NCBI GenBank assembly: GCA_002269645.1 | Contig: NIVC01000704.1 | Coordinates: 203,692-267,691 of the forward strand | DNA length: 64,000 nucleotides | Origin: Macrostomum lignano | Lineage: Eukaryota | Direction: 5' to 3' | Shown here: positions 20,530 to 37,241 of the stretch, piece after piece | How the letters are laid out: the number at the start of each line of letters is the position of its first letter | Numbering within the stretch: the first letter of the stretch is position 1 | The notes under the pieces: model-generated | Seen by the model: the letters and a program-made list of their open reading frames with translations, nothing else | Databases searched by the model: none | Told to the model about the DNA's origin: nothing | Translations under genes and position numbers: made by a program

Positions 20530-23500
20530 CTACGCTCGCACTGGCCGGTGCCTCAGGTCGCTGTCGTTGGCGCTCCGCCCGCCGCTGCTGCCAACGGCGC
20601 CGCCGCCGCCACCGCCGCCACTTGCAGAGGCGCCAGCGGCGGCGTTGGCATCATCCGCTTCCTGGTTGCGCTTGCGGGCCGCAGCGCGCTTCCTCTCGTA
20701 CAGAGCGATGATCACAGTCAGGATGGCGATCTCCACCAAGATGCCGAGGAAGGGCCACAGGGCGGCAAGACGGTCTGGCAGTGAAGGAGGCGATGCTTGT
20801 TGAGCTTGGCGTACAATGGCGTACAATGGACAGGGCTTGGCGTACAATGGCGTACAATGGACAGGGCTTGGCGTACAATGGCGTACAATGGACAGGGCTT
20901 GGCGTACAATGGCGTACAATGGACAGGGCTTGGCGTACAATGGCGTACAATGGACAGGGCTTGGCGTACAATGGCGTACAATGGACAGGGCTTGGCGTAC
21001 AATGGACATGGCTTGATGTACAATGGACATGGCTTGGTGTGCAATGGACAGGGCTTGGCGTACAATGGGCTTGGCGTACAATGGACATGGCTTGGTGTAC
21101 AATGGACAGGGCTTGGCGTACAATGGACATGGCTTGGTGTACAATGGACAGGGCTTGGCGTACAATGGACATGGCTTGGTGCACAATGGACATGGCTTGG
21201 TGTACAATGGACATGGCTTGGCGTACAATGGACATGGCTTGGCGTACAATGGACAGGGCTTGGTGTACAATGGACATGGCTTGGCGTGCAATGGACATGG
21301 CTTGGTGTACAATGGACATGGCTTGGCGTACAATGGAAGGGCTTGGTGTACAATGGACATGGCTTGGCGTACAATGGAAGGGCTTGGCGTACAATGGACA
21401 GGGCTTGGCGTACAATGGACATGGCTTGGCGTACAATGGACATGGCTTGGCGTACAATGGACATGGCTTGGTGCACAATGGACAGGGCTTGGCGTACAAT
21501 GGGCATGGCTTGGCGTACAATGGAAGGGCTTGGTGTACAATGGACATGGCTTGGCGTACAATGGACATGGCTTGGTGCACAATGGACATGGCTTGGTGTG
21601 CAATGGACAGGACTTGGTGTGCAATGGACAGGGCTTGGTGTGCAATGGACAGGGCTTGGCGTACAATAGACAGGGCTTGGCGTACAATGGACATGGCTTG
21701 GTGTGCAATGGACAGGGCTTGGCGTACAATTGACAGGGCTTGGTGTGCAATGGACAGGGCTTGGTGTGCAATGGACAGGACTTGGTGTGCAATGGACAGG
21801 GCTTGGTGTGCAATGGACAGGACTTGGTGTGCAATGGACAGGGCTTGGTGTGCAATGGACAGGGCTTGGTGTACAATAGACAGGGCTTAGTGTGCAATGG
21901 ACAGGGCTTGCTGTGCAATGGACAGGGCTTGGTGTGCAATGGACAGGGCTTGGCGTACAATAGACAGGGCTTGGCGTACAATTGACAGGGCTTGGTGTGC
22001 AATGGACAGGGCTTGGCGTACAATAGGCTTGGTGTACAATGGACAGGGCTTGGCGTACAATGGACATGGCTTGGCGTACAATGGACAGGGCTTGGCGTAC
22101 AATGGACAGGGCTTGGCGTACAATGGACATGGCTTGGCGTACAATGGACAGGGCTTGGCGTACAATGGACATAGCTTGGCGTACAATGGACAGGGCTTGG
22201 TGTACAATGGACAGGGCTTGGCGTACAATAGGCTTGGTGTACAATGGACAGGGCTTGGCGTACAATGGACATGGCTTGGCGTACAATAGACAGGGCTTGG
22301 CGTACAATTGACAGGGCTTGGTGTGCAATGGACAGGGCTTGGCGTACAATAGGCTTGGTGTACAATGGACAGGGCTTGGCGTACAATGGACATGGCTTGG
22401 CGTACAATGGACAGGGCTTGGCGTACAATGGACAGGGCTTGGCGTACAATGGACATGGCTTGGCGTACAATGGACAGGGCTTGGCGTACAATGGACATAG
22501 CTTGGCGTACAATGGACATGGCTTGGTGTACAATGGACAGGGCTTGGCGTACAATGAACATGGCTTGGCGTACAATGGACAGGGCTTGGCGTACAATGGA
22601 CAGGGCTTAGCGCAAAAAACAACTTAAAAAAACTAATTGGACAAGACGGTGTAAAAGGACACAAAAAGCAGAACACGAACTCTCAGTAGCACTTGGTAAA
22701 ACTTTGTCGGTTCTGCCGGGAAGCACAAAGCAGTTTTAAGCTGTCTATAAAGCCCACAGCCTTGAAGTGGCAGCACCCGAGAGGCTGAGCATTATTAGTT
22801 CGCATTAGCTTTTTGCCCTGCGCCGAGCGCTCTCAGCCCGGCTTTATAATCCGAGCAAAGGTAGCGCGTAATTCCCTGAAATCATCCTCATTCCTTCGCG
22901 ACACGAGCTACGCTCGTATTTCAGATCTCAGCCTCTCCCACCGCAGTACGCAATCAGCGGCTGCAATCAGATATTCTGTCTGTCTGCCTTCCCAGCGCCC
23001 CTCTCCGTCCGAAATCCCAAGATCCCATCGCTAGTTAGTTGACATTCTGCCCTGCCAACTTGTGCCTCGGACCAAATCGCCCATATCTGTGTCTCCCGGT
23101 CCGGCCTGCCTGCCTGCCTGGCGAATGCGAAGTAGACAGTATAGGAGGAGGAGAAACAGCACACAAGCAGCATTGACAATTCTGGGGCACAAGTTTGTTG
23201 CTCGCATTTACGTTGGTGAGGAAAATGGCTGATTAGGACACAGAGAGAGAGAGACGCCGAGACACAGCAGAGTGAATTGAGTTCCTCGACGCAAACTTTT
23301 AAAAGTGCAGGGAGATGGGATAAAAAAGGCGCAGGCCCGCGGCCGCAGTGGCCCTCCGCCCGGGTCAGAGCGGCCTCTCGCACAGCCGCCCCCGGCAGCA
23401 CAGGCGGGTTGGCGGGCAGAGAGGAGTTGAGTGAGCAATGGGGCAGAGAGGAAAGCCGCGCCTGTGTACGCACGCAGGCATCCCTACCAGGGAGCCGCGG

Positions 23501-36000: not shown

Positions 36001-37241
36001 AAGTGTGCAGCGTGATGCCGCCCCAGAGCAGCATGGCGCCTCGGAATGTGTAAGCGGTCATCAAGTGAGTCAGCAGCGGCGGCATCAGGAAGGAGCCGAT
36101 TGGTCCGCCAGCGAAGGCGATGCCGTTCGCCCTGCTACGGTACCGGTCGAAGTACTGATTGAGCAGCAGGATGGCCGGGTTCTGGCTGGCCGAGAGCCCC
36201 AGGCCGAGCAGCACGGCGGTGCCGGAGGACAGCGCGGCCGGAGTAGGCAGGAAATAGGCCAGGCAGAGACCGCCGCTAGTGAGGAGGCCGCCGATAAAGA
36301 TGAGAATCCGGCAGCTGACCAGCCGAGTCATGACGATGAAGACCATGCCTAGAGTGCAACGGGGACACAAGGAAAGGTGAACCAGGTAAAGGATAAGTTT
36401 GTCATCTGAATAGCCGGGTGTAGGAGAGTTTGAGAAGCTTTTTGTGGTGAGAGCGGTTTAGTGTAAGGCTTTTCTCTGCCTGCTTTAAAAGACAAGGTTG
36501 TTTAACCCTGACCCTTGTGACCATCTGAACGTGGTGTGATTATCAGCAAAATTTATGGACTTTTAAATACGAGATTGCAGAAATTCAACGTCTAGCTTGA
36601 GGTTGCAGATCCTTTCTGCTTCTCAGAAGCCTGTTTTTAGTTTCTTCACGACTGTTGTTACCAGGGTGCATCTGCGCCTACATGTATGAGCAACGCTTAG
36701 CTCTAGGTCAAGTTTTCCCGGCAGGTGAACTCTTGCCCCTGTGGTTTGTCGGGTCTAACAGAGCCGATGAATACACTATCATTGGCAAGTAAAGGACAGA
36801 TAGTCTTAGAGCTTCCCAACCTAGAAATAATATACGAGTAGAATACGTTCCCTACCGATAATTCAAAAGAACTCTAAAGACTACAGAATGCTATTATCAA
36901 CCCATCGGGTAAACCACGGTCTTAAAAGCACTCACTGAACACCGTGAATGTGACGTAGGTGACGCTAAATATGACTGACGAGTCGCGCTTCTTCAACGAG
37001 AACTCAAGCGACGCACTGTTGACAAGAATGCCGAGGCAGCGGATCGAGCCGAGGGTGACGATGTTGATGATGCACACAGCTGCGCGGAGTAAAGGAGGGG
37101 GGCGATTGGAACTCAATGCCTGGTGGCTGGTTAGCTGACCTCTCATGGAAGGCTGAGGAACTCACCGACCGCGATGACCCAGGCCCAGCCCCGGTCAATG
37201 CTGGGGTCTACCGGAGCTTCGGCTGCTGAAGCGGCCTTCAT
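30089..37241 (-). CDS. SLC16/monocarboxylate transporter-family MFS protein, 531 aa. Exons 37241-37166, 37079-36936, 36348-35128, 30243-30089.
   Basis: N-terminal DRGWAWVI (SLC16 DGGWGW motif), QYFDRYRSRANGIAFAGGPIG, FRGAMLLWGG...CLMRP, TM8 PDLVSR (D-x3-R pair), final exon GHIFDKLDTW. Junctions are GT-AG, phase 1, 1596 nt in total. Confidence 0.92.
30558..30940 (+). mobile_element. tRNA-derived SINE-like element in the MCT last intron
   Basis: A-box-like ccttgtggttaa, B-box gggctcgattcc, agtcacattaacttg core, A-rich tail aataaaaaattaaaa. Confidence 0.6.
31102..31602. mobile_element. hAT-type MITE (501 bp) with a perfect 8-bp TSD
   Basis: TIRs tagggattgcaa / ttgcaatccta. TSD ctcaataa at 31094-31101 and 31603-31610. 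Many subterminal atcccgggat palindromes. Confidence 0.92.
31700..34900 (+). mobile_element. DIRS/Ngaro-type tyrosine-recombinase retrotransposon, frameshifted, antisense in the MCT last intron
   Basis: ORF1 from 31919 has a SAP motif and, after two frameshifts, CGLFDSNRGCQKQPCNFAHVCRICEAPH. RT: VSPLGAIKKSNGGIRLIHDAS, KIDLSQAYRSV, DTRLPFG, YLDDF. DIRS-type RNase H: IDNSAAV...FHMSG...SDPLSR. Only a degenerate start of the recombinase remains. Confidence 0.88.
33085..33180. repeat. 12-bp repeat (ccgccagcccag) x8 encoding PPAQ upstream of the retroelement RT
   Basis: Direct reading. Confidence 0.9.

Follow-up and report, generated by a model that had tools for sequence, protein, structure and literature searches.

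When a transporter gene lies next to the gene of its possible ancillary subunit, are the two a co-regulated unit or simply neighbours? The question is raised by a 64,000-nt stretch of the Macrostomum lignano genome (contig NIVC01000704.1 of assembly GCA_002269645.1, positions 203,692 to 267,691 of the forward strand; hereafter the window), in which an SLC16-family gene for a monocarboxylate transporter (MCT)-like protein is directly followed, on the same strand, by a basigin-family gene. An earlier note, made from the letters of the window, had proposed a co-regulated and possibly polycistronic transporter-plus-chaperone unit. We concluded that the locus probably holds two ordinary, separately transcribed host genes arranged head-to-tail, which encode plausible protein partners and whose adjacency is lineage-specific, with no hallmark of operon organisation or of conserved gene clustering. 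The MCT and basigin genes would each be transcribed on their own, and their products would plausibly act together as proteins. Both genes were already in GenBank; their adjacency appears to have gone unremarked before, and no paper on SLC16-basigin synteny was found in a literature search.

The transporter gene occupies positions 30089-37241 of the minus strand (PAA78150.1, BOX15_Mlig025237g2) and encodes 531 amino acids in four exons (37241-37166, 37079-36936, 36348-35128 and 30243-30089). Its introns of 86, 587 and 4,884 nt have GT/AG borders throughout, and the spliced translation is identical to PAA78150.1. The last exon does lie, as the earlier note had described, behind an intron of about 4.9 kb that contains mobile-element sequence, here antisense retroelement open reading frames (ORFs).

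The claim that this gene belongs to SLC16 was borne out. Pfam MFS_1 matched residues 16-404 (2.2e-25), and among solved structures the best matches were MCT2 (3e-24) and MCT1 (6.5e-21), followed by MCT10 (1e-12), MCT8 (1e-6) and the bacterial SfMCT (1.5e-5). Alignment to these structures divides the fold into two homologous halves (residues 8-211 and 337-521) separated by a low-complexity loop of about 125 residues, and the protein has the SLC16 layout of an MFS fold, 12 transmembrane (TM) helices and a long cytoplasmic loop between TM6 and TM7. All 20 of the nearest relatives that carry a name are MCT-like and come from non-flatworm phyla, which points to SLC16 rather than to another MFS family. 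When an exhaustive search of representative sequences was made, the nearest relatives outside Macrostomum shared only 25-31 % identity; these were mollusc, echinoderm, tunicate and arthropod proteins named MCT 3/5/12/13/14-like, with primate MCT3 at about rank 45. NCBIfam TIGR00892, a strict subfamily model, scored 150.9 bits (E-value 4.7e-44) and did not reach its curated cut-off of 586 bits. Because of this low identity and the score below the cut-off, the sequence is classed as a divergent SLC16 member whose orthology to any one vertebrate MCT, including MCT1-4, is not established. Monocarboxylate transport and dependence on an ancillary subunit are putative properties of this protein.

The basigin-family gene (20530-26987, minus strand; PAA78149.1, BOX15_Mlig027858g3, named 'Basigin' in UniRef) encodes 313 amino acids in six coding exons (26987-26933, 25971-25684, 25204-25130, 24683-24568, 23787-23625 and 20774-20530), and its spliced translation is likewise identical to the GenBank protein. 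Solved structures ranked basigin first (2.7e-18) and then neuroplastin, both ahead of generic immunoglobulin (Ig) proteins, with embigin also listed, and the alignment continued through the TM helix. Pfam Ig_3 and I-set were found on Ig domain 2. The AlphaFold2 model (mean pLDDT, the predicted local distance difference test score, of 83) shows a helix at residues 3-14, beta-sandwiches at about 19-129 and 132-232, a helix at 235-280 and a disordered tail. The predicted layout is that of the family: a signal helix, two Ig domains, one long TM helix and a short tail. When this model was used for a fold search, the chains of NPTN (from a PMCA complex), BSG (from an MCT1 complex) and EMB (from an MCT2 complex) were among the tandem-Ig proteins recovered.

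The last exon (20530-20774, minus strand) contributes the TM helix, in which Glu247 lies, as well as the cytoplasmic tail, and its TM block, which defines the family, aligns without gaps to basigin and neuroplastin. The core of this block does not vary among the flatworm, rotifer, bivalve and JGI sequences, and the TM/juxtamembrane block ending in YEKR is near-invariant between phyla. Glu247 (in LVEIAIL) falls on the TM Glu of basigin and neuroplastin, so that both the family identity and the conserved Glu named in the earlier note were upheld. E occupies this column in 18 of the 33 aligned homologues, the two M. lignano paralogues included; the remaining sequences have V or I. We regard the downstream gene as the flatworm orthologue of the basigin/neuroplastin/embigin ancillary subunit. 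Basigin-like proteins of the bdelloid-rotifer type keep the DRLAALWPF(L/I)GI block, but their Glu is replaced by V or I.

Some features of the basigin introns were also noted. The annotated acceptor of exon 5 lies at 23788/23787, and an in-frame tag|cag| acceptor pair (23842/23839; additional sequence 23838-23787, minus strand) upstream of it would add 17-18 residues between the two halves of Ig domain 2. An exon 5 starting at 23838 (17 additional amino acids) was rejected as the gene model, since with the acceptor at 23787 the GenBank protein is obtained and agreement with the paralogue improves; the upstream acceptors may be used in alternative splicing. The last intron contains a 21-nt tandem array of about 80 copies (20941-22612, without strand; Tandem Repeats Finder (TRF) and the ORF list), in which spurious ORFs of up to 688 codons occur in several frames, one of them continuing into the true last exon. 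Other arrays in the introns of this gene are (GACA)n with 83 copies at 24196-24531 and a 43-nt unit with 5.7 copies at 25405-25651.

Could the two proteins work together? TM6 Asn187 of human MCT1 hydrogen-bonds with Glu218 of the basigin TM helix (PMC7996999, PMC11947448), and the same papers agree with the earlier statement that basigin serves as an MCT ancillary subunit through its TM Glu. His188 of the Macrostomum transporter falls on MCT1 position 187 in a gap-free alignment, as had been claimed. Across the 150 cluster representatives nearest to the transporter, the residue here is always polar (N74/H73/Q17). His is about as common as Asn there, and judged from the alignment the substitution is therefore real but ordinary, one of two common states. 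The TM8 D-x3-R pair reported in PDLVSR was likewise recovered: D382 (D in 103 of 155) and R386 (R in 137 of 155) both align with the D...R pair of MCT2, and R39 stands at the position of MCT1 K38 in a column with K67/R51. The transporter thus carries R39, D382 and R386 as equivalents of the coupling residues K38, D309 and R313 of MCT1, where D309 and R313 are the MCT1 numbering of the residues matching D382 and R386. It is plausible from these residues that the two proteins are compatible partners: basigin keeps its buried TM Glu, for which His188 would offer a polar residue at the Glu-bonding position of TM6.

When compared with the vertebrate MCT1/3/4-basigin and MCT2-embigin complexes (6LZ0, 7CKR, 7YR5 and 9L0B), the Macrostomum pair belongs to the same two families, with the TM Glu in the Ig subunit and a polar TM6 contact and K38/D309/R313 equivalents in the transporter. 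The contact residue differs, being His in Macrostomum and Asn in human MCT1, and the association in Macrostomum is a prediction. The invertebrate basigin/neuroplastin proteins of bivalve, ant, amphioxus and rotifer have the same two Ig domains followed by the near-invariant TM/juxtamembrane block. The neuroplastin/basigin-PMCA complexes (6A69, 9GSD) show that the family also has clients other than MCTs; Macrostomum basigin matches the neuroplastin chains about as well as the basigin chains of MCT complexes, and no PMCA gene is present in the window.

If the proteins are compatible, was the neighbourhood of their genes selected? The alternative that survives best states that the genes are separately transcribed but that their neighbourhood was kept in Macrostomorpha for co-expression, through shared enhancers or a common chromatin domain. 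The well-established functional tie between the two families speaks for it, as do the retained partner residues, the a priori improbability that two small families become neighbours by chance, and the presence of the same adjacency in a homeologous copy that could be verified. This homeolog lies on contig NIVC01000598.1 (locus L001) and has the same gene order and orientation as the window. Its MCT copy (97 % amino acid identity) ends at record position 118192, and its basigin copy (309 of 313 amino acids identical) starts at 132935. However, the homeologs are only about 5 % diverged. For this reason their shared arrangement is uninformative on selection: the adjacency was inherited by recently duplicated copies, and its retention at such a divergence is expected.

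The spacer also argues against selection, as it changes more quickly than the genes do and takes up large insertions. In the homeolog it measures 14.7 kb, and its identity to the window copy is 91-94 %, compared with 95-97 % for the genes, which makes it the least conserved segment. The extra DNA consists of two insertions, one of about 4 kb and one of about 7.5 kb. Their places correspond to about 27666 (first insertion) and about 27335 (second insertion) in the window. The first carries a pol region of a long terminal repeat (LTR) retroelement with reverse transcriptase-RNase H and integrase domains (L001 19809-22555, minus strand of the locus), in two reading frames with one break, which is missing from the window copy. 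The second is only some 350 nt away from the basigin start codon, on its upstream side. This position favours a short, proximal basigin control region and hence an independent promoter, provided that the homeologous copy is expressed. A third contig, NIVC01000703.1, starts within the same expanded spacer.

The second insertion also contains a 201-codon ORF (L001 24106-24711, minus strand of the locus) with a match to the left-handed beta-helix/hexapeptide repeat of eIF2B-epsilon (E-value 5e-10) that falls short of the cut-off; a captured gene fragment and a repeat artefact are both conceivable origins.

Beyond the recent duplication, the adjacency was not seen at the loci compared. The basigin homologues retrieved by word-indexed protein searches came from Macrostomum, the only flatworm among them, and from rotifers, molluscs, amphioxus, insects and fish. 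M. lignano itself has two diverged basigin paralogues (37-41 % identity), of which just one neighbours an MCT; at the second (P0007, Mlig033367), no MCT-like sequence was found within 10 kb on either side by annotation and tblastn. No MFS gene stands alongside the basigin-like genes of Adineta vaga, A. steineri and Rotaria. These rotifer genes share another conserved neighbourhood with E1_dh, BSD and Arb2 and have lost the TM Glu (V or I), whereas the Macrostomum gene keeps the Glu and has an MCT as its neighbour. Within 10 kb of the basigin-like genes of Mytilus and Branchiostoma, a short flank for genomes of this kind, no MFS gene was found either. The genes for MCTs and basigin are on different chromosomes in vertebrates, whereas they are 3.1 kb apart in Macrostomum. 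The synteny of SLC16 and BSG for which the earlier note had called thus did not appear at P0007 or in rotifers, and among the loci compared, microsynteny was seen only in the homeolog. Selection for a dedicated pairing is also not implied by the protein tie, since the basigin family serves other clients such as PMCA (NPTN-PMCA structures). We consider a selected neighbourhood unlikely on this evidence. A broader statement, that the adjacency is a selected transporter-plus-chaperone cluster of macrostomids or of flatworms more widely, held together by a shared regulatory domain or by a spliced-leader (SL) operon with a long spacer, seems to us distinctly unlikely. Two separately transcribed genes in a lineage-specific neighbourhood, of unproven selective meaning, remain the best reading.

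The next alternative is an operon resolved by SL trans-splicing, in which transcription from the MCT promoter reads through and the basigin mRNA is freed by addition of the SL at 27094, with stoichiometric co-expression of transporter and chaperone as the outcome. M. lignano is a free-living flatworm in which SL trans-splicing and operons occur and whose very repeat-rich genome has recently undergone large-scale duplication (PMC8629364, PMC5730564). About 15 % of its genes are in operons (PMC8629364), and 30 % are SL-spliced, the majority of them outside operons. The layout of the locus fits this alternative: the genes are adjacent and co-oriented, and the 3,101 nt (26988-30088, minus strand) from the MCT stop codon at 30089 to the basigin start codon at 26987, in agreement with the spacing of about 3.1 kb reported earlier, hold no annotated or detectable gene. 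No Pfam-recognisable ORF, Rfam family or tRNA was found in this spacer, nor any tandem array, and no dispersed repeat was detectable when it was compared with about 170 kb of M. lignano DNA. It has no second copy in the window and matches only its homeologous counterparts, so that the 'repeat-like relics' which the earlier note had placed there could not be verified.

An acceptor-like site that fits [T/C]TNCAG, the SL-acceptor motif published for this species (PMC8629364), is also present. TTGCAG at 27100-27095 (minus strand; exon start at 27094) is the ccccttgcag| acceptor pointed out earlier at 27096/27095; it stands 107 nt before the basigin start codon, is the sole such site within about 560 nt upstream of it, and is a candidate SL or 5'-untranslated-region (UTR) acceptor. 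The motif occurs four times in the spacer against 5.5 expected, and because this is chance frequency the match has no weight. A leader starting at 27094 would hold an upstream ORF of nine codons (27063-27034). At the other end of the spacer, a pattern scan found AATAAA at 29753-29758 (minus strand), about 330 nt past the MCT stop codon and the only canonical signal within 790 nt past it. It is a candidate poly(A) signal that would give a 3' UTR of about 350 nt, and it counts against read-through; about 2.6 kb separate it from the candidate acceptor.

The spacing differs from that of known operons. In M. lignano, operons were defined by a repeat-adjusted spacer of <1,000 bp, with a mode of about 100 bp, and an SL-spliced downstream gene (PMC8629364). 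The spacer in the window is three times this threshold and 30 times the modal distance, and sequence comparison with the same 170 kb or so of M. lignano DNA found no repeats to subtract from its 3,101 nt. The locus thus shares same-strand neighbours and a [T/C]TNCAG acceptor with the operons of Ustyantsev & Berezikov 2021 (PMC8629364), but has a spacer of 3.1 kb, extended in the homeolog to 14.7 kb with a retroelement inside, where theirs are <1 kb with a mode of 100 bp. The annotation gives a further indication. Name prefixes in this annotation stand for clusters of RNA-seq transcriptional units (PMC5730564), and they differ between the two genes in all copies: Mlig025237 is used for the MCT copies (g1 and g2) and Mlig027858 for the basigin copies (g1, g2 and g3), and never do both fall in one unit. 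These prefixes are only suggestive against a shared unit. No expression or SL entry for the MCT and basigin gene identifiers was found in the full texts and supplements of the M. lignano papers searched, and the partial coding sequence of the basigin paralogue, whose 5' end (L003:10001) has no preceding AG, is uninformative on SL use. The co-regulated, possibly polycistronic interpretation is not supported, in view of the long spacer, the LTR element in its homeolog, the separate prefixes and the chance frequency of the acceptor motif, and we hold an SL-resolved operon to be improbable.

An annotation or assembly artefact, by which the genes would not be true neighbours, might be suspected in Mlig_3_7, a redundant assembly of a repeat-rich and partly polyploid genome, but is highly improbable, as the order and orientation are identical on the independent contig NIVC01000598.1, NIVC01000703.1 starts inside the same spacer, and 26.5 kb of the window (36987-10530) are 100 % identical to NIVC01000704.1 of GCA_002269645.1.

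Two points weigh against reading the genes as separately transcribed, chance neighbours. First, a rough estimate puts the chance of an SLC16-basigin adjacency specified in advance at about 1e-3, given two basigin loci, an assumed number of about 10 SLC16 genes and about 25,000 genes. Second, RNA-seq transcriptional units can be split at long or repeat-rich spacers, so that differing prefixes are compatible with a common precursor (PMC8629364). As for the first, the adjacency was noticed post hoc, in a scan open to any adjacent interacting pair. Since tens of thousands of interactions are known, a few chance adjacencies per genome are to be expected. The adjacency is a fact and not a statistic, and one lineage cannot settle whether it exceeds chance.

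Several other features of the window were recorded. Intron 3 of the MCT gene (30244-35127, minus strand; 4,884 nt with GT/AG boundaries) contains an antisense retroelement remnant. Its first part is an ORF of 256 amino acids with an N-terminal SAP domain (31919-32689, plus strand; Pfam SAP 2.2e-13), followed by a broken reverse transcriptase-like gene (32958-34839, plus strand) in which consecutive portions of the RVT_1 profile are weakly matched. The reverse transcriptase domain is spread over two reading frames with at least one frameshift-type break and includes stretches of simple repeats. Protease, integrase and recombinase domains were not detected in this intron, and no terminal direct or inverted repeats or LTRs were found within it. 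The same content is present in the homeolog L001 at about 95 % identity, which dates the insertion to before the duplication.

Upstream of the MCT gene, a single-exon ankyrin-repeat gene of 447 amino acids (40719-42062, plus strand; Pfam Ank) is transcribed divergently from it. Most of the 3.5-kb gap between this gene and the MCT start is occupied by a 28-nt tandem array of 76 copies with 95 % matches (37949-40077, without strand; TRF). The arrangement of the ankyrin-repeat and MCT genes is also kept in the homeolog L001. Downstream of basigin, a polyprenyl synthase gene lies at about 10300-12300 (minus strand; annotated as 367 amino acids) and follows the basigin copy on NIVC01000703.1 (L005) as well. 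Between basigin and this gene there is an LTR-element fragment, a gag-protease ORF that encodes a CCHC zinc knuckle together with an aspartyl protease of retroviral type (16341-17327, plus strand).

Towards the ends of the window, an actin-family ORF of 417 amino acids (57850-59103, minus strand; Pfam Actin 1.5e-84) is covered over its whole length by an antisense ORF of 451 codons (57826-59181, plus strand). The latter has no family match and is probably a by-product of codon bias. The window starts with a 12/24-nt tandem array (342-2499, about 90 copies of the 24-mer), in which ORFs of more than 700 codons occur on both strands.

The present value of the adjacency is modest, that of a single-lineage curiosity. 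PAA78150.1 and PAA78149.1 nevertheless form a clean flatworm sequence pair, suited to modelling an MCT-basigin interface in which His takes the place of Asn, at a TM6 contact position where all sampled relatives have N, H or Q. Should the linkage prove to be conserved and the two genes to be expressed together, the pair would point to which invertebrate SLC16 transporters use basigin, and would represent an unusual animal clustering of genes for non-homologous, interacting membrane proteins. A selected cluster, if true, would be a rare case in animals of a membrane-transporter gene physically linked to that of its obligatory ancillary subunit.

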